Part shown: piece by piece, positions 1,312-63,419 of the stretch
Layout: each line of letters starts with the position of its first letter
Numbering within the stretch: the first letter of the stretch is position 1
DNA from: Tubulanus polymorphus
Lineage: Eukaryota; Animalia; Nemertea
Direction: 5' to 3'
NCBI RefSeq assembly: GCF_964204645.1
Contig: NC_134031.1
Span: 12,340,088-12,404,087, forward strand
Length of the DNA: 64,000 nt
Program-made: the position numbers and the translations under genes
The notes under the pieces: model-generated
What the model was told of the DNA's origin: nothing
What the model saw: the letters and a program-made list of their open reading frames with translations, nothing else
Database searches by the model: none

Positions 1312-4300
1312 TGTGATATGATTGTGTATATATACATCAATAAAAGTAGTTCCAAGTATGGCGGTCGTTCTTGTCATGTGTTGTTGTTATCTGACGCTCT
1401 GACAGTCGAATATATTTCAAGTCCTGATATCGGAGGACATCATAACATGGTGGCAGCGGGAACAATAGACGCAAGAGATCATCCGGAACGCAGTAAGTCA
1501 TCTTGCCGAGGCTTATGTACGCCATAATTGTCATAGATGTAGTTGGTTAAACTGTTAACTTCGAATATCGGTTGTCATCGATTGCTGCTTGCTATTTCGC
1601 AATCGGATGTTTTGCAACCGTGCATTCACGGTGCTTCCCATTGATTGATGGGGCAACGGAGGTTTGCTGCTTCTTCGTAGAAACGACTGTGATCGAAACG
1701 CTGTTCTGGTGAAGAGGGACATGTCTGCAGTGTGGTGATTTCTCGTCAGTGATATATCTTACGGACGTGTAACAGCGATATACGGTACATTCAACGGTGG
1801 ACATAGAGACGCATTTATGCTGATCCTGGTGGACGAACGTTCTTCAGTATTGCTGGTTATCTCTGTTACGGACAACTCGTCGCTGATTAAAAAATTAAGA
1901 TTTTGTTCAGTGTGACTTTCAATCCGGTTCATTCGTTGATCACGTATTTTAAAATAAGAACTGTGCATTATTTCTTATTCTATATTGGCTGCTGTTTAAA
2001 TAACAGACATTAATTCAACTTATATAATTTCTTTTTTTAATGATTAAGTATTTGATATTTAGCAGATAACTTCCATCGTGTATAATTCACCATAGTTTTA
2101 TTAATTTTAAGAGTAGAGGTAATATTAAATTGTTATTGTTGATATTTACATCACATGTTAAACTGTCATAATGTCCAAAATACCAGAAATGAATTGGGAC
2201 TCATCCGACCTGGCTGGGGAGTTTAGAATCTTTAAGCAAAGGGTCCAGTTGTGCGTTACCGACCAGGGTATCACGGATAGCACGAGAGTAGCTGTCAAAA
2301 TTAAAATTGCAGTCGGGGCTGAGGGCCTACGGACGATAAACGCATCCGGACTGAAGGAGGCAGAGCAAAACGACCCAGAGATTTTATGGACATTTTTCGA
2401 AGACAACTGAGAGTCAAGGTCAACTTTAGAATACATAGACTTGAACTGCTGAGATTCCGACAGTATGAGGCGGAGACCTTGGACGATTTTGTGACCAGGT
2501 GTTTGACAAAGGCCAAGGAATGTGATTTCACAGAAGAAGAGAAGGCCCAGCGTATCATAGAACTGGTCACTGCATCGACTCCTTTTGATGAATTCCAGCG
2601 CAAACTCCTGGACACGGCTAAAGGCTTCAAGATTGACGAACTTCTGAAACTCGGAAGGAAATTTGAAGATGTCGCAGAGAGTAGAAAATGTCTGCGAACT
2701 CTTAAAGGCAATAAAAAGGTTGACGCTATACATCAGACTAGTAAATGCAGGAACTGTGGTTTACAGCATCCACTGAGAAAGTGTCCAGCCTTCAAGTCCA
2801 AATGTCATGGTTGTGGTAAAATTGGCCACTGGGCCAGATTCTGCAGAACGTCGAAGATGAGGAAACGATCGTCTTCGAGACCAAAAGATAGCCGTCCAGT
2901 TAACCGCCAACAAAGACCCAACAGGAGCGCAAGTCGCAGAGGTCGACATAGATCACACAGAAACAACATCGAAACCAATGACTCAAATGAAAACACAGCG
3001 GAAAGAAAACCTAAGAGAGTCGGCACAGTGTACCAGAACTGCGATAGAGACGACGATTCAGACGATTTTGATGGTTACGTATTTGAGTCGATACACACGA
3101 GAAATAGAACTCGAGACAAACCATACGCGCTACTCGACATTGACATTAATGGCCACCGGAGGCCTAAGTGCCAACTTCGTGTAAAAATCGATATTGGGGC
3201 CCAAAGAAACACACTGCCGACCAGAATCTTCGGGCAGAGGTGGCCATACAAGGTCTCGTCAGATGGTAGAATACTGGCTAGTGAGAGTGGTGCGAAACTT
3301 TTTGCGTATAATAACACTGAGATACACCACCATGGTGTAATTAAGATACCGTGTAAATACAAAAATAGTCAACTCGTGAGCACAGAGTTTTTCATCGTAG
3401 ACGTTGACGGAACTGCTGTGGCTGGGTTGCCTACCTGTGAGGCACTAAACATCGTGTCAATGAACTGTACCATACATCACAAGAAAATCGACGGCAAACC
3501 AATCACTTCAGCCCAGCAACTCATAGATATGTACCCTGACCAGTTTGATAAAATTGGTTGTTTTCCAGGCGAAGTCAAGCTACATGTCGATCCTGACGCG
3601 ATGCCGCATATTGATGCTCTGAGGAAGACACCAATAGCTTTAAAGGAGAAGATTAAACTAGGGTTAGATAAAATGGAAAACGAAGACAAAGTTATTCGGA
3701 AGGTCTCTATCGAAGAACCAAGCGAGTGGGTCTTAAGTTTAGCTTACTCACTGAAGAAAGATAGTGATCTACGTATCTGCCTGGATCCCAGACACCTAAA
3801 TGCCGCATTGAGGAGACCACACCACAAGATTCCGACGCTTGAAGAACTTAACCATAAGTTTAGCGGAGCAAAGTATTTCAGTAAACTGGATGCCAAAGCC
3901 GGTTACTGGAGTGTCAAATTGCACCCAGATTCTCAACTTCTGACGACGTTCCAGACCGCGTATGGATGGTACTGTTTTACTAGGTTGCCATTTGGGCTCT
4001 CTGTGAGCCAAGACATATTCCAGTCAAAGATGGATACGATCCTAGAGGGGCTGGAAGGTGTTGTTAGCATCGCCGATGATGTATGCGTCGTTGGTAATAC
4101 CAGTGAAGAGCACGACACCAATATAATCAACCTGATGGAACGAGCAGAAGAGAATGGGTTAGTGTTTAATTTCACCAAATGTAATATAAGGTGTCCGGAA
4201 GTCGAGTTCTACGGTTCAGTCTACAGTGAACGTGGTATGAGTCCAGATCCAACGAAAGTGTCCGATCTCAGAAACATGTAAGCTCCGGAAAATAAGCAGG

Positions 4301-4850
4301 AACTTCAGGAATTCCTTGGACTGCTGACATACCTCAGCCCGTTCATTCCAAAACTGTCAAGCAAGGCGTATATCCTGAGAGAACTGCTGAAAAAAGATTC
4401 GGATTTCCAGTGGGAAAAACATGACAGTGATTGCTTTGACAAACTGAAACAAAGCATATCTGAGTACTCAACTCTAGCATATTTTGATACACAAAAGACA
4501 CCTATACTTATGACAGACGCAAGTATGAAGGGACTCGGAGCTAGCCTTTTACAAGAGGAAGACGGATCCAAATTACTTAAACCCGTGGCTTACGGTTTCG
4601 AAGACTTTGTCTCAGTCGGAGAAGAACTACGTGTGTATCGAGCGCGAACTCCTTGCAATTGTCTTCGGAGTGCAGAAGTTTCATACATTCCTGTACGGCA
4701 GACCATTCAGAGTCATAACAGACCATAAGCCCCTAGTAAAGATAACTCAAAAAGTCTAACGAGTGCTCCACCACGATTACAGCGAATGCTCCTCAAGCTG
4801 CAGGGATACAACATGAATTTAGAGTACAGGCCAGAAAAAGAAATGACATT
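1312..4850 (+). mobile_element. 3'-truncated Ty3/Gypsy LTR retrotransposon (putative 5' LTR about 1312-2155; no integrase, no 3' LTR)
   Basis: TGTGAT...ATCACA ends for the LTR candidate, followed by gag-pol remnants. Homology stops abruptly after RNase H. Confidence 0.85.
2171..4850 (+). pseudogene. Gypsy gag-pol pseudogene
   Basis: Gag from 2171 with a frameshift near 2400. Two CCHC knuckles (CRNCGLQH..C, CHGCGKIGHWARFC). Protease site decayed to DIGA. RT motifs LDAKAGYW, RLPFGL, IADD. Stop at 4279-4281, then RNase H TDAS with a frameshift near 4590. Confidence 0.92.
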
Positions 4851-5619
4851 TGAATATTGAAATTATATTTTACACATCTTTATATTGACCGCTTGTCGCT
4901 TGTAGCCGCCGATGAAATTCACGCCTACACAGATCGTAGATAGCTTCGTCATTCCACCAGTATCCCAATGTCAGGTTCTGACTTTTATATCAGACTTCCG
5001 CATCGTGTATACATCCGCCATTTAACCGAATAATCCGATTTACTTATAATTTCTATTTATGCCTGCCTTCGGATATAATCATATATCCTTTTCTATTACA
5101 ATAAGTCTTCTAATGATATTCAATGCAATATAACATTTCGACGTTCAAATATAGGTCATTATATAATCACAGGAAGCCATTCTACATCTTTGTCAATAAT
5201 ATTTTGCCAAATAGCTTGTATGTGTACACATAGACCTGTGACGTTTTGCACATTGATTTACGGTTGTAGTTTGTAAAATGACGCTGAATGGTTAATATTG
5301 TTTAGGTTTCATAATGGTAACAGTTAAAAGGCGTCAAAAAAGTTAGTGATATAAAAGAATTAGAGGATCTAAAGGTATAAAATCTTGACTTAAAAGTATG
5401 AAAAGTTTAAGAAATCATAAATATATTCATGAACTAGATGAATTAATGAAATAAATTAAGAAATATTTATACTTTTATAAAATATACCCCCTGTGTCTTT
5501 ATATTTCTCTCATATATAAAATATACCCCTTATTTCTTTATTTCTCCTGTGTGATTTTAGTTGTTTTAGTAAATAAGGAATATCAAAGTAATTTGAAAAA
5601 TAAAAAAATAAAAAATGAT

Positions 5620-59052: not shown

Positions 59053-60218
59053 CTACGAGCAGTCAACAGGAGGAGGCTAGGCCTATATTCCTGTACACAC
59101 GATCAGTAATGCTGTCAATAAAACTGTTGCCACATGCTATTTGATGATCAGCTATTTCTGTCTGATTTCGGAGTTTTCTCTGTGACGTATTCACGTGGGC
59201 AGACATGGATAAAATGAGCAGACCATAGAATAATATCATAACTCATATACAAATTACAAAATCAAGTATTTTCATCGTCCGAAAAGTAATTTTCATCTTT
59301 TAAAAATGTATAACGGAGGTAACTTCTCCTCCGTAAAGAGAACACTGCGGCACCCGAAATTCAGGCAAACACATATCTTTGAAAATAATCTAATATTTCA
59401 ACGTTGTGTATATGTATTCATTGAAATAATTCTTTTTTGGTTTATTTCTTTTTCAATTTTCGAGATTAGTATTTGTTTAGTTCACCAACAAAACATTCGA
59501 TGAAATCACAAAAAATTGGAAAGAATGACTGCGTTTCATGCAACTTCTTTATCGATGAAAAACTGAAGAGTTTCTAAGATTTTTTTCTGGAATTCTGTGT
59601 TTTCATATGGTAAATAAATAGTGCCCTCGTAATTTCTTATTGATTTATGTTAAAAGGAAATCAACTTTTTACCTATATGATCAGCGTTTCTACAAAAGTA
59701 AGTCAAAATGAGGAATTTGATGATCGGCCATATTATAGGGTGAATACATCGTATTTTTTAAAGTTTTTGGGGGCATTTCAGCCAATTTCCGCATAATTCA
59801 GCATTCATCAGAATGTAATCCAGGCGTTCATCAACACTCCACCTACTCAAAGCTGGACATTTTATTCACAGGAACTGTCAGAAACATACAAAATATGTGA
59901 TTTATGAAATGAATTTATTGCTGAACATACTAAAAATCTCGTGAGATGCAATGATATCGTAAAAATCTTGATTATCAACCGATTTTCAAATGTTTTTGAC
60001 CAGTTGTGGATTTCATACGCACAGTCATTGCGTCTGTTGGCTACTTCATATCAAAAACTACCTCAAAGAATGCTTTTAGAATCAATGCGCAGAGCAGCTA
60101 TCCAGCGATGGTGAATCCAACAAACGTTGACTGTATGATTGACAGCGTTACTGATCATATCAGTGCGTAACACACTGATTTAGGCCGAGCTTCCTCCTGT
60201 TGAGATGATTGCTCGTAG
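59053..60218. mobile_element. Non-coding TIR element with a 7-bp TSD
   Basis: ctacgagca..caacaggaggaggctaggccta is inverted to taggccgagcttcctcctgttg..tgctcgtag. GGCAGAT at 59046-59052 and 60219-60225. Confidence 0.75.
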
Positions 60219-61080
60219 GGCAGATGCACTCAGCGAATCTTTACGAATGTTTCTAACATCGGGCAACGCGATAATCATACAAGAGGTCGATGGACCTTGA
60301 GACTATGTCGAGATTATCGGAAGTTCCAGTTTGGGAAAAGGAACAAGTCCCGCCTCGCCGGGCAGGCTTGGTCAATGTAGCCAGGGAAGTGTGATGAGAT
60401 GGAATACGGACGCTTTTAATTGCCGGATGTAGGCTATTCAATTCAGCCCGTACATCAAAGGTTACCGCAACAGCAGTAAGCTACGCTTATCGAGTGTGTG
60501 TTACCAGCTGAACACCAGTCAACATCAACTTTGATTCGGTCGCAGAACAACCCGCAATAGTTTTAGCCCGATAAATGTTCTGCGATCGATACTACGCATG
60601 CGCACTGCAGTTCATTGAACAACGTGGAAGTGGCTGTGTATACACATATTTTTCTTTAGAAAATCGGTTGAAATTCAACAATTTCTCGTAAAATTTGTCC
60701 AAAAAGTATTTTTATTCTTCTATATCTCCGAAACCCGGTATCGGAACATTAAGTATTTATATCGTGATTAAAGTCTGTTTTTATGTGTTAAACATATGTT
60801 TTTGCCAGTTCGTTCCGATTCCGGGTTTAGCGTTATTTGGGCCTTGAAGATGTCAAATATTTCGGCCCAGACTCGCGCAGCTTTCGTTTCTGACGTCATG
60901 TTGCTATGTTACGACACAAACATATACACGAAGTATGATCTTTAAAATGTGTATTTACTACATAATAATGTTACTTAATAACGCTTACATTAGGCCTACA
61001 AATTATTGTCCCCCATATAAACCAAGTTGCCTAAATAGCATCAGCAATCTCATTTGATTAACCTTTTCTTGTTTTTAGTC

Positions 61081-61290
61081 ATGGATCTTTGTCGATTGTG
61101 TGGAAAAAATGCGAAACCTCTGGATCGTCGTCCTATCGATAAAAATAATTTCGAAAGCCATGTGAAGGAGTTGTTCAACATTGATTTTGATGATGATACT
61201 GAACAGTACCCGATATATATCTGTAATATGTGTCGTGTCAAATTACAATATGGCGTAAGAACAAAAACGTTAAAAAAACTGTCCCTGTGA
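61081..61290 (+). pseudogene. 5' stub encoding a CxxC...CxxC Zn-binding domain of Chapaev/RAG1-N-terminal/ZAD type
   Basis: MDLCRLCGK...FESHVKELFNIDFDDDTEQYPIYICNMCRVKL. Confidence 0.6.
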
Positions 61291-61622
61291 CTATCAAATT
61301 AAAACAATGGACATGTAAACCACTGGTTAATTCCAAGTCTGGACGGCGACGTATTTGTAGTCCAAATTTTATCGATCGATTTTCCATAATGTACTGCTGC
61401 CATTCCATTTGAACTGAATTTAAATACTCGATGGTCAATCACTTCAGTCATAGCCTTTTCCAAATATATAGTGTTCCTGCGAAAATAATAATAATGATTA
61501 TTATTTTAACATGTACTTATCTGGATTTTTTATATTATGTTTATATATTATTTTCTGTATTCGTTTATTATTTTATAACCTAAAAGGATTGTATTGATTA
61601 TAAAAATAAATGTAAAAAATAC

Positions 61623-61913
61623 CTGTATGTGTGTTTTCTCGTGTTCAGATCGCAGTCTCTGGTCAGCTGAGCCTGAGAAGTACCTATATGAAAAAGAAAA
61701 GGAAAGAATAAAGTGCCTGCAATTAGGTGGAAACTATTCCGATATTTCATTGATTCAAAAGGAATAACACTCACTAGAATCGGCCGAATTAGTTGATCCT
61801 GATCCAGAGGATTCCCGTAATATTTCCGTATCGATCTGAACCAATTCGTCACTATCAAAGAATAGATCGTCAAAATCGTCATCATTTATAATTTCGTTGA
61901 CAACCGTTGCCAT
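61623..61913 (-). pseudogene. 5' stub of an unknown spliced gene (exons 61775-61913 and 61623-61683) with an acidic N-terminus
   Basis: aaaATGG start, GT-AG intron of 91 nt with a polypyrimidine tract, in-frame MATVVNEIINDDDFDDLFFDSDELVQID...SSTSQAQLTRDCDLNTRKHTY. Confidence 0.5.
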
Positions 61914-61939
61914 TTTAATACAGCGGAAAGGACCGATAT

Positions 61940-62346
61940 CACGATTGATAAAACACTATATCCGTCTGAAGCGATGTAGAGAGAATCCCACAATGATAAC
62001 GAAAAAGTCCAATTAAAAATGTTAGTAGTTTATTCAACGTTTCGTCTATGTCCTAATAGTCATCTTCAGAAATAATGAATACTACAGAAATTATGAGAGA
62101 TATATACAATCCAGAGACAAAGAGACCAATTCAAGTAACCAGAGATGATACTAACTAAAGGAAAATTAACGTAGAAACAGTTACACGCTAAAACAGATTA
62201 AAGAGAAGCAGTTAAGAGACAAACTAGGGGGCACTTAAATTTAAGACAATTGTGAATACAAGTTGATCGACTAAAATTGATGAGGGGAAATCAGGTGTTG
62301 AGTTTAACCAGTTTAATTTTTATATAAGTTTATTATGGGATGAAAA
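61940..62346 (-). mobile_element. Short copy of the same Penelope-like family as 21598-22542, with a hammerhead at about 62031-62075
   Basis: Shared pLTR and 3' tail; flanked by ACCGATAT at 61932-61939 and 62347-62354. Confidence 0.85.
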
Positions 62347-63419
62347 ACCGATATTCGGAAACAACTGAATTATTACGGAGATTCCCGATCTCGCTGGTTA
62401 TCGCTTATCGGCGCGTTACGTAACAAAGCGCTCGCCGACGAACCGTTATCGGCTTTAAGGCAATTACAACGCACATTCGACAAGAGCTGCACAATAGCGT
62501 CCGTATTCCATCTCATCACACTTCCCTGATGTAGCTAACCATATAAATTACAATTATAACAAATATACATGTCAGCACTTGTGCTGAAATGTAATTTAGA
62601 ATTCAATACTGTCTTAATTTTTAAAGTTACGCTTGTTTTCTGGGCTTATTTTCTCAAAGATCTGCATGAGCTGAAACTTTCTGCTAGTAATTCCTTTGAG
62701 GTTTATGTTTGATGCTCTATCCAACCATTCTAGTTACAAACTGCACATCAGTGAATACCTCTTAAAAGCAGATAGATGAATAACAGCCACAGCTATAACT
62801 CCGAAGAAGGCAAAAAAGGTCTCTCAACAAAACTGTCTTTGCTATTAGGATTTAAAGGTTAATCGTTATCACTAGCAAAGTATGAATTAGCTTTGACATT
62901 TAAACTAAACTTGTACAAGAAATTGTCACACCAAAACAAATGTTGCACCAAGCTCTCTATGTTCTGGAGTTGAAGTGTGAAGATGGCTGAACGAAACATA
63001 TGTGATTAAATCAAAATCGATCTACTTCTCGATAATTTTGATAACAGACAAGTTGTCGACAAACAGAAGATAGTCCGCTGAGACTTGAATTGTATTAACT
63101 TCAACTTTTTTAAATGTGCAGTCTGAGGGAAATTCAATGAACATACATAAGTAACATCCGATGTATCACTACTGCATGTGCTGGTACCACAAGGTTGTTT
63201 CAGATAGGAAATGCCTTTACTCTCATCTTCCCTTGCCAGGGTTTCGGTATCGATGTCAACAATTTATTGTTGACAATCCTACCCACATTACTACATGTGA
63301 TAATATCAGCACTAATGTCATCTCAGAAAACGAAGCCCTGCAAATTCTATTATCATAAATTGTGTAGGACTTCATGATTCCAATAAATTTTACTTTTAAT
63401 TGCTACTTAAAATCCAAAA

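Follow-up and report, generated by a model that had tools for sequence, protein, structure and literature searches.

A 64,000-nucleotide stretch of the Tubulanus polymorphus genome (the window) was found to contain, at positions 60382-62528, a young P-element-type cut-and-paste transposon copy with an internal deletion. This 2147-bp copy is non-autonomous, and the full element, at 5.9 kb, is a member of the P superfamily with 33-bp inverted ends and two convergent genes. We put at about 0.8 the probability that the window element is the deleted form of a two-gene P-type transposon bearing a zinc module of the ZAD/NZD type. A search of the literature turned up no P-type transposon described as having this zinc module, or as having a separate gene for the transposase C-terminal domain (CTD).

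Ends, copies and gene remnants of the element

The inverted ends (TIRs) of the window element, located at 60382-60414 on the plus strand and 62496-62528 on the minus strand, begin with CAGGG and are fully complementary over 33 nt, and at 97% over 36 nt. The sequence ATGTAGC at 60375-60381 is repeated exactly at 62529-62535, giving a 7-bp target duplication. The initial annotation had reported the perfect ends and the exact duplication, and both were confirmed. Locus L053, a paralogous and uninterrupted copy of the flanking repeat, holds the target once and is therefore an empty site. The 30-nt TIR end was found 58 times on each strand of the genome, and never for the reversed control; the ends are thus not a product of chance. 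At least 27 full-length copies, approximately 98% identical, are present in the genome, and 26 of the 27 have their own exact 7-bp duplication. Mean divergence of the copies from their consensus is 0.7%, with the window copy at 0.5%, and the target consensus of the family is palindromic (T-T-N / N-T-N-N-A-A-N / N-A-A), with 7 bp duplicated. The genome also contains copies of a second deletion class, as well as a MITE of 181 bp.

The P superfamily is characterized by CANRG-type ends and a target duplication of 7-8 bp, a range into which the CAGGG ends and 7-bp duplication fall. Ends of approximately 30 bp, a palindromic target and many internally deleted derivatives are likewise shared with the superfamily. 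It is generally known that ends of the CAGNG kind occur in hAT elements too, and we therefore considered whether the element might be a hAT or come from a different superfamily having CAG-type ends. However, the duplication is 7 bp rather than 8 bp in all but one of the copies, the transposase has matches to Pfam domains specific to P and to the P transposase structure 6p5a, and no hAT domain was found. The hAT assignment was rejected on the basis of the duplications and the P-type domains, and we regard its probability as negligible. The 7-bp duplication does differ from the 8 bp generated by P and Pdre (PMC7776569).

Examination of the genome revealed three long copies of 5.5-5.9 kb (L031, L032, and L033), the first of which is 5910 bp. 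Compared to L031, the window copy is without 3671 bp (locus positions 1427-5097, or 3.7 kb), and the deletion junction lies at 61314/61315 with 1 nt of microhomology. These comparisons upheld the original proposal of a derivative that lacks the middle of a two-gene transposon, here arranged tail to tail, with longer partners in the genome. In the long copies, gene 1 has five predicted exons and encodes a P-element/THAP9-type transposase, and gene 2 has three predicted exons and is convergent with gene 1. Splice sites were predicted from the sequence together with conserved exon boundaries, and domain searches and folding were performed exon by exon rather than on joined spliced proteins. The two genes are never open together in any one of the three long copies; open copies of each exist in separate elements.

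The left subterminal region and transposase-gene leader of the window copy (60415-61080, plus strand) is 96-97% identical to L031 positions 534-1188. A polypyrimidine tract and AG just 5' of the transposase ATG suggest a spliced leader. The plus-strand open reading frame noted originally by its CRLCG motif is present, and starts at 61081 with MDLCRLCG. The exon 1 stub (61081-61314) encodes a zinc module resembling a ZAD or the first zinc site (ZFa) of the RAG1 NZD, as indicated by its zf-AD score and by matches to ZAD structures. In the window copy the frame is shifted near codon 57, and in most short copies it stays open for 124 aa and codes for the zinc module alone. Beyond the junction, on the minus strand, lie approximately the first 53 codons of gene 2 exon 3 (61315-61476, AG acceptor at 61478-61477), the 61-nt exon 2 (61623-61683, with AG acceptor and GT donor, and the same frame open in L031 and L032), and exon 1 (61775-61913, with GTGAGT donor at 61774-61769), which supplies the ATG and an acidic N-terminal segment. 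A minus-strand gene start with two exons had been noted previously; the start was confirmed, and the exon count is revised to three. The gene 2 upstream and right subterminal region (61914-62495, minus strand) has one repeat unit of approximately 145 bp fewer than the long copies.

With both ends retained, the 2.15-kb copies would be mobilized in trans by proteins from the few long copies. Like the KP derivative, they retain the ends and an N-terminal DNA-binding module, and we speculate that short copies coding for the 124-aa zinc-module frame could act as KP-like repressors; such a role is putative. We rather favor the idea that the short copy is itself the functional unit, reaching its copy number in MITE-like fashion through efficient mobilization of a small element, with the gene stubs as debris. 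At 0.7% divergence from the consensus, open frames are expected by chance; the stub in the window is frameshifted, and both the second deletion class and the 181-bp MITE exist. This idea is compatible with descent from a two-gene P-type transposon, and disputes only the repressor proposal.

The transposase and its N-terminal zinc module

When single exons of the L031-type transposase were searched against Pfam, TNP-like_RNaseH_N (PF21787) was matched with an E value of 2.4e-26 (93 bits) and a transposase HTH with 5.8e-4. The RNaseH_C domain (PF21789) was matched at 1.4e-4, with 22.2 bits against a cut-off of 24 bits, and the GTP-binding insertion (PF21788) was detected with exon 3 alone at 9.5e-4, with 20 bits against a cut-off of 24.8 bits. 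Spliced relatives at 35% identity matched the PF21788 insertion domain at 1e-15. The Drosophila P transposase structure 6p5a was matched at an E value of 1.8e-7, and the catalytic motifs FDEMKV and VSDG aligned. The P-type affinity suspected initially is thus supported by both RNase H domains and the match to 6p5a, and a Chapaev- or Transib-type transposase was rejected, the core being P-type.

Gene 1 stops 52 residues past RNaseH_C with no fused C-terminal domain, and the transposases of relatives P0011 and P0036 likewise end soon past the RNase H fold. Pfam searches of the window stub and the long-copy transposase gave no match to THAP; more distant relatives of approximately 900 aa do have a THAP domain (PF05485). 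The order of gene 1 is a zinc module, an HTH, and an RNase H fold that a GTP-binding insertion probably interrupts, without a P-type CTD. The HTH, the RNase H fold with its probable insertion and the aligned catalytic D/D motifs are as found in Drosophila P, THAP9, and Pdre. Unlike those proteins, the transposase begins with a ZAD/RAG1-NZD-like module in place of THAP, and a CTD would be supplied by a separate convergent gene rather than fused.

The N-terminal module has the pattern CxxC ... CxxC with a basic helix after it, and would bind a single zinc. Residues C4, C7, P44, C48, C51, and W58 are invariant in alignment A1. With the Pfam zf-AD profile, which has a cut-off of 28 bits, the module of L031 reached 32.4 bits and the window stub 28.9 bits. 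The module also matched five ZAD crystal structures (7po9, 1pzw, 6fp5, 7pok, and 7ppp) with Z scores of 6.5-7.8 and rmsd of 2.2-3.3 Å over 63-66 residues, and the next unrelated match had a Z score of 3.1. The same features, CxxC ... CxxC with HP..xC..C and a basic helix, constitute the first zinc site of the RAG1 NZD and Chapa modules.

A profile of the module retrieved 530 proteins, some of which match RAG1_imp_bd and were retrieved at E values down to 5e-17 (P0016). Among the 60 long retrieved proteins, RAG1_imp_bd is matched by 34 (best E value 1.3e-32), and P-type transposases account for 15. The relatives matching RAG1_imp_bd include P-type transposases of sea cucumber, crinoid, and mussel, and the match spans approximately positions 137-220 of the profile. 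Against a cut-off of 23.3 bits, RAG1_imp_bd scored 33.7 bits on P0011 and 29.6 on P0017, both P-type transposases, 23.3 on the Mytilus locus L047, and 17.1 on the sibling family L035. Ligands of the second zinc site (ZFb), an extra His plus His/Cys/Cys, are kept in relatives, and both parts are found in 50 of 116, including the Mytilus, Apostichopus, and Antedon transposases. The window family has no such second site: its protein begins MDLC, and the module is not followed by His ... CxxC. The second zinc site has been lost in the window family, and the module is reduced to its single-zinc half.

The stub and the long copies gave no Pfam match to RAG1_imp_bd and score as ZAD only, and a search of the whole genome with that profile found none on these elements, with the search controls silent as well. 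The original description of the Cys motif as RAG1-N/Chapaev-like thus holds for relatives that pass the RAG1_imp_bd threshold, and does not extend to the score of the window family itself. The solved NMR structure of the RAG1 NZD was absent among the Foldseek PDB matches of the module, and a word-based protein search with the zinc module alone returned nothing. A feature search of the ESM Atlas gave sub-threshold leads to a RAG1_imp_bd cluster (0.88) and a zf-AD cluster (0.83).

An ordinary ZAD, acquired from a ZAD zinc-finger gene of the host and with no special link to RAG1, would fit three observations: zf-AD alone scores in the window family, every top match among solved structures is a ZAD, and RAG1_imp_bd has no match in this genome. 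However, a zf-AD search of the genome revealed no host ZAD gene; all 45 zf-AD matches and all 75 module-profile matches lie inside these transposons. P-type transposases of at least three phyla share this conserved module at their N-termini, and relatives reach the RAG1_imp_bd threshold and keep the ligands of the second zinc site. Capture from a host ZAD gene was rejected on the genomic and phyletic distribution of the module, and we consider an ordinary ZAD unlikely. A preprint independently ties the ZAD to the half of the RAG1 module that holds the first zinc, and the two labels are therefore not exclusive.

In place of THAP, the gene 1 product thus has at its N-terminus a zinc module with the ZAD fold, of the RAG1-NZD/Chapa kind. 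It is like RAG1 NZD and Chapa in having the CRxCG ... HP..xC..C motif and then a basic helix, and unlike them in residing on a P-type transposase, in having lost the second zinc site, and in having no RING finger after it. With the ZADs of arthropod C2H2 proteins it shares the fold and a zf-AD score above threshold; it differs in being followed by an HTH and RNase H rather than a C2H2 array, and in the strongly basic helix past the second CxxC. We infer that the module would act as the end-binding domain of the transposase.

A convergent second gene

The predicted product of gene 2 is all-helical, and its C-terminal 170 residues appear to have the fold of the P transposase CTD, with a conserved basic tail. 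When compared to residues 617-734 of chain B of 6p5a (DmTNP), the model aligned over 113 of 118 residues with a Z score of 10.3, an rmsd of 2.8 Å and 21% identity, although Z scores below approximately 13 may reflect a common helical arrangement; the next match had a Z score of 5.1. The match was obtained with one predicted model of pLDDT 80, based on a 12-sequence alignment. Plain Foldseek placed the P transposase CTD 21st, at a probability of 0.75, and structural re-alignment raised it.

Among 12 gene 2 homologs, Tnp_P_element_C (PF12596) was matched weakly in three, with a best E value of 0.025, and THAP9_C (PF22824) gave one faint match. Neither profile matched any gene 2 copy genome-wide, and the search controls were silent too. 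Window-family gene 2 had no match among PDB chains in single-sequence or profile searches, and gene 2 has no Pfam family and no kelch domain. Its acidic start resembles that of the crinoid homolog P0001.

The modeled fold moderately favors gene 2 as a detached P transposase CTD that acts with the transposase. This CTD has been described as exclusive to the P and THAP9 proteins. Within the complex formed by P transposase, the CTD hangs on a flexible linker and packs against the other subunit (PMC7776569), and its action in trans is therefore structurally plausible. The gene 2 product might join the transposase in trans, fill the position that the CTD takes between the RNase H and insertion domains, and there contact transposon and target DNA, as an accessory subunit or a regulator of integration. 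A preprint reports that Drosophila and human proteins lacking the CTD still excise and integrate; gene 2 may therefore be dispensable or inhibitory.

DNA transposons commonly capture genes, and gene 2 might be a passenger with no role in transposition, whether it was captured from the host or arose as an insertion unrelated to the element. Its lack of a Pfam family and the reported dispensability of the CTD for P and THAP9 activity are in keeping with this. Nonetheless, gene 2 has the same position, orientation and short tail-to-tail spacing in five families as well as in crinoids and mussel, its motifs are conserved across phyla, and every match to it in the genome adjoins a P-type transposase or sits in a deletion derivative. 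Moreover, its modeled fold matches the one domain absent from the transposase. We judge a passenger very unlikely, and retain the detached CTD as the favored account of gene 2.

Distribution of the two-gene layout and its implications

The same layout was found in five diverged families of this genome, which share 25-47% protein identity, and outside it in Anneissia, in Mytilus, and at two Antedon loci with annotated genes of 869 and 445 aa. Seven of seven other elements with definable ends (five in this genome, one each in Anneissia and Mytilus) have 7-bp duplications, and the sibling, crinoid, and mussel ends begin with CAGGG, CTTGG, CATGG or CATAG. In crinoids the gene 2 partner has a PHD finger.

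The likeness to ProtoRAG proposed initially holds for the layout, with two tail-to-tail genes within one TIR pair and an NZD-type module on one of them, and the PHD finger of the crinoid partner recalls RAG2. It does not hold as homology; unlike ProtoRAG, the element has an unrelated catalytic core, different ends and a duplication of another length (7 bp here), and its partner protein, predicted to have the CTD fold, is neither RAG2-like nor a kelch propeller. PIF/Harbinger elements also encode a second conserved protein beside the transposase; the one found here is not Myb-like, and resembles a detached transposase domain.

We tentatively propose, as a possibility short of even odds, that these elements constitute an old and widespread P-type clade of several animal phyla which operates with two proteins, a catalytic subunit led by the RAG1-N zinc module and a detached CTD partner that is PHD-fingered in crinoids. 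If so, the RAG1-N/Chapa module would have moved between unrelated transposase superfamilies, and single-zinc ZAD-like forms would have arisen from it, or preceded it, inside transposons. The puzzling N-RAG-TP of Aplysia, which has been described as consisting solely of sequence like the RAG1 N-terminus, may then be a P-type deletion derivative like the window copy.

The Chapa/NZD module has been stated to be absent from transposons other than Chapaev (PMC4411706; preprint 10.64898/2026.01.24.700457), and models for the origin of the RAG1 N-terminus rest on that confinement. P-type transposases from at least three phyla begin with the module, which occurs in two-zinc and in reduced, ZAD-like single-zinc forms. 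These provide natural intermediates between ZAD and NZD, whose relationship has been proposed, and make P-type transposons a second possible donor lineage for the RAG1 N-terminal module. The family is directly testable, because it is young, with copies differing by approximately 1%, and each gene is open in some copies, though not in the same element. A clade with the CTD as a separate conserved gene would constitute a natural experiment on the role of that domain.

A recently mobile P-type element and its copies

The window element (60382-62528) is a P-type cut-and-paste transposon that has been recently mobile. Its ends are perfectly complementary over 33 bp starting with CAGGG, and 97% complementary when extended to 36 nt. 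ATGTAGC adjoins the element on either side, bearing out the perfect terminal inverted repeats and 7-bp target duplication read in the initial annotation. The terminal repeat was then sought genome-wide and the duplications tabulated, as had been proposed. The 30-nt end occurred 58 times per strand in the 268-Mb assembly, compared with zero for the reversed control, and a DNA search revealed at least 27 full-length copies of ~98% identity. Among 27 full-length copies, oriented and aligned, the mean distance to the consensus was 0.7% (0.5% for the window copy) and pairwise divergence was 1.25%. An exact 7-bp duplication of its own flanked each of 26 of the 27. The exception, L022 (G000 C2:17956419-17958568), has unrelated left and right flanks; its lack of a duplication could be due to recombination between two copies or to an adjacent deletion. 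The target site of the 26 duplicated copies is a 13-bp palindrome, with T at -3 (23/26) and at duplication position 2 (21/26), and A at duplication positions 5-6 and three bases past the duplication (23/26).

The window element was inserted into an older repeat, and the left flank (window 60082-60381) comprises two different repeat families whose copies, 80-93% identical, number in the dozens. L053, an uninterrupted paralog of the flanking repeat elsewhere in the genome, holds the target once and therefore amounts to an empty site for the insertion.

Longer copies, such as the initial annotation had thought might exist, were located as end pairs with wider spacing. Two of 5910 bp, L031 (G000 C6:18193703-18199612) and L032 (G000 C8:4047801-4053710), are 99.6% identical to each other, and a third, L033 (G000 C4:10190125-10195635), is 5511 bp. 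Positions 1427-5097 of the L031 locus are absent from the window copy, with the deletion junction at window 61314/61315 and 1 base of microhomology. In L031 the transposase is open, and gene 2, the convergent partner, is frameshifted at its start; in L032 transposase exon 1 is frameshifted and gene 2 is open; L033 has lost ~390 bp spanning exon 5 of the transposase and the 3' half of gene 2. The three long copies thus include none with the two genes open together, yet the window family could still be supplied in trans.

At least 11 copies (for example, G000 C9:9754767-9756987 and C7:16709610-16711830) form a second deletion class, ~2221 bp long, which has breakpoints other than those of the window copy and retains ~78 transposase codons and, from exon 3 of gene 2, ~80 codons. 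A 181-bp MITE (L034:201-381, equivalent to G000 C5:14489728-14489908; second copy at C5:14525260-14525440) joins the initial 148 bp of the left end to the 33-bp inverted end, and has its own 7-bp duplication, GTAATTC. By the right end of the long copies lies a tandem duplication of ~145 bp (L031:5858-6145), of which the 2.15-kb copies have one unit fewer.

The transposase and its N-terminal zinc module

The transposase and gene 2 lie tail to tail in five diverged families of this genome (gene 2 identity 25-47%) and likewise in Anneissia and Mytilus elements. Two Antedon loci, 99.5% identical, have tail-to-tail annotated genes of 869 and 445 aa, and in Holothuria the two genes are 7.5 kb apart. 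All seven outside elements with definable ends (five here, Anneissia, and Mytilus) have 7-bp duplications, and their ends start with CAGGG, CTTGG, CATGG, or CATAG.

Gene 1, on the plus strand, was searched exon by exon. Exon 1 of L031, a 614-codon open frame, matched TNP-like_RNaseH_N (E 2.4e-26), weakly the P-type HTH (E 5.8e-4), and zf-AD at the N-terminus, and the last exon contained TNP-like_RNaseH_C. The GTP-binding insertion domain matched weakly in one middle exon searched singly; annotated relatives of ~35% identity match it at 1e-15. Gene 1 matched the Drosophila P transposase (6p5a_A; E 1.8e-7), and the alignment brought the catalytic motifs FDEMKV and VSDG into register. Exon order and boundaries were identical across all relatives examined. 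Because gene 1 stops 52 residues past the RNase H C-terminal motif, with a basic, NLS-like tail, it lacks the ~185-residue C-terminal domain (CTD) of P transposase.

An alignment of the N-terminal module from the window family, two sibling families, one crinoid element, and one mussel element revealed as invariant CRxCG, a Pro, a second CxxC, and a Trp within a basic helix. The initial annotation had described a Chapaev/RAG1-N-like zinc domain, and this holds for relatives that pass RAG1_imp_bd (cut-off 23.3 bits): the P-type transposases P0011 (Apostichopus, 33.7) and P0017 (environmental contig, 29.6), and the mussel element at exactly 23.3. A sibling family in this genome stays below the cut-off, at 17.1. 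The window-family version, however, scores with zf-AD (32.4 bits, cut-off 28), and structural alignment of its model (pLDDT 73) gave Z 6.5-7.8 for five ZAD crystal structures and Z 3.1 for the next unrelated chain. In most relatives a His lies ~8 residues ahead of the first Cys, and ~30 residues beyond the module there is a His ... CxxC; together these make up the ligand set described for the second zinc site of the RAG1 N-terminal zinc module, or NZD (preprint 10.64898/2026.01.24.700457). Since both parts are lost in the window family, its module is a single-zinc form.

The module profile gave 530 matches among 1.84 billion representative proteins; the 60 long matches included RAG1_imp_bd (34, best 1.3e-32), zf-AD (23), P-type transposases (15), and RING (7). 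Host capture of the module was rejected, as every zf-AD and module-profile match in this genome falls within these transposons. Carriers that are not P-type include amphioxus P0016 (Branchiostoma lanceolatum, 1290 aa) with three NZD-like modules in tandem, P0121, a predicted IDO, NZD, and RING protein, and P0100, a 1046-aa NZD and DUF1280 protein.

The convergent partner gene

Gene 2 is on the minus strand, as the initial annotation had it, but reads as three exons rather than two. The first encodes an acidic start, the second is short, and the third has 331 codons, for ~400 residues in all. No Pfam family was found for it; homologs occur in crinoids, sea cucumber, and mussel, with motifs kept across phyla. 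The model is all-helical (pLDDT 80), and residues 136-305 superpose on 6p5a_B, the CTD of Drosophila P transposase (617-734), at Z 10.3 and rmsd 2.8 A over 113 of 118 residues with 21% identity; the next chain is at Z 5.1. Tnp_P_element_C matched weakly in 3 of 12 gene 2 homologs and THAP9_C faintly in one, and for the window-family gene 2 neither PDB-chain sequence and profile searches nor genome-wide Tnp_P_element_C and THAP9_C searches gave a match.

In both crinoids the partner gene has a 5' exon (L046:10001-10279 in Anneissia; L049:12874-13110, minus strand, in Antedon) for a PHD finger of the ING type (P0001 matches Pfam PHD at E 3.5e-4), whereas the window family has only the acidic exon at its N-terminus. 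By analogy alone, such a partner, as a PHD-finger accessory subunit, recalls RAG2.

Placement and a possible division of labor

By catalytic core and ends the window element belongs to the P superfamily, and both Chapaev and ProtoRAG identities were rejected. Two usual features of the superfamily, a THAP domain and a fused CTD, were sought in the element and neither was found; Drosophila P and THAP9 have both, whereas the window family has a ZAD/NZD-type module and a separate gene 2. The module, called Chapa in Chapaev, has been stated to be restricted to Chapaev and RAG1 (PMC4411706; preprint 10.64898/2026.01.24.700457), and the CTD is stated in the literature to occur solely inside P/THAP9 proteins. 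Our literature search returned no paper describing this two-gene P-type clade, which may be catalogued in Repbase or Dfam. Database labels on its members are 'uncharacterized', 'P transposase' or, wrongly, 'RAG1'. P0166 (Mytilus coruscus CAC5392196.1), named 'RAG1', is probably mislabeled, being an N-terminal piece of such a transposase, and the P-type transposase P0190, filed as 'uncultured Candidatus Thioglobus sp.', probably comes from host DNA that was binned with a symbiont.

The zinc module would bind the element ends, and the gene 2 product would provide the CTD in trans. Such an arrangement is plausible because in the P transposase complex a disordered linker bears the CTD, which lies against the other subunit, between its RNase H and insertion domains, and contacts transposon and target DNA through a basic tail (PMC7776569); the gene 2 product likewise ends in a conserved basic tail. 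In a preprint, P and THAP9 proteins without the CTD are reported still to transpose, and the role of gene 2 may accordingly be regulatory rather than that of an essential subunit.
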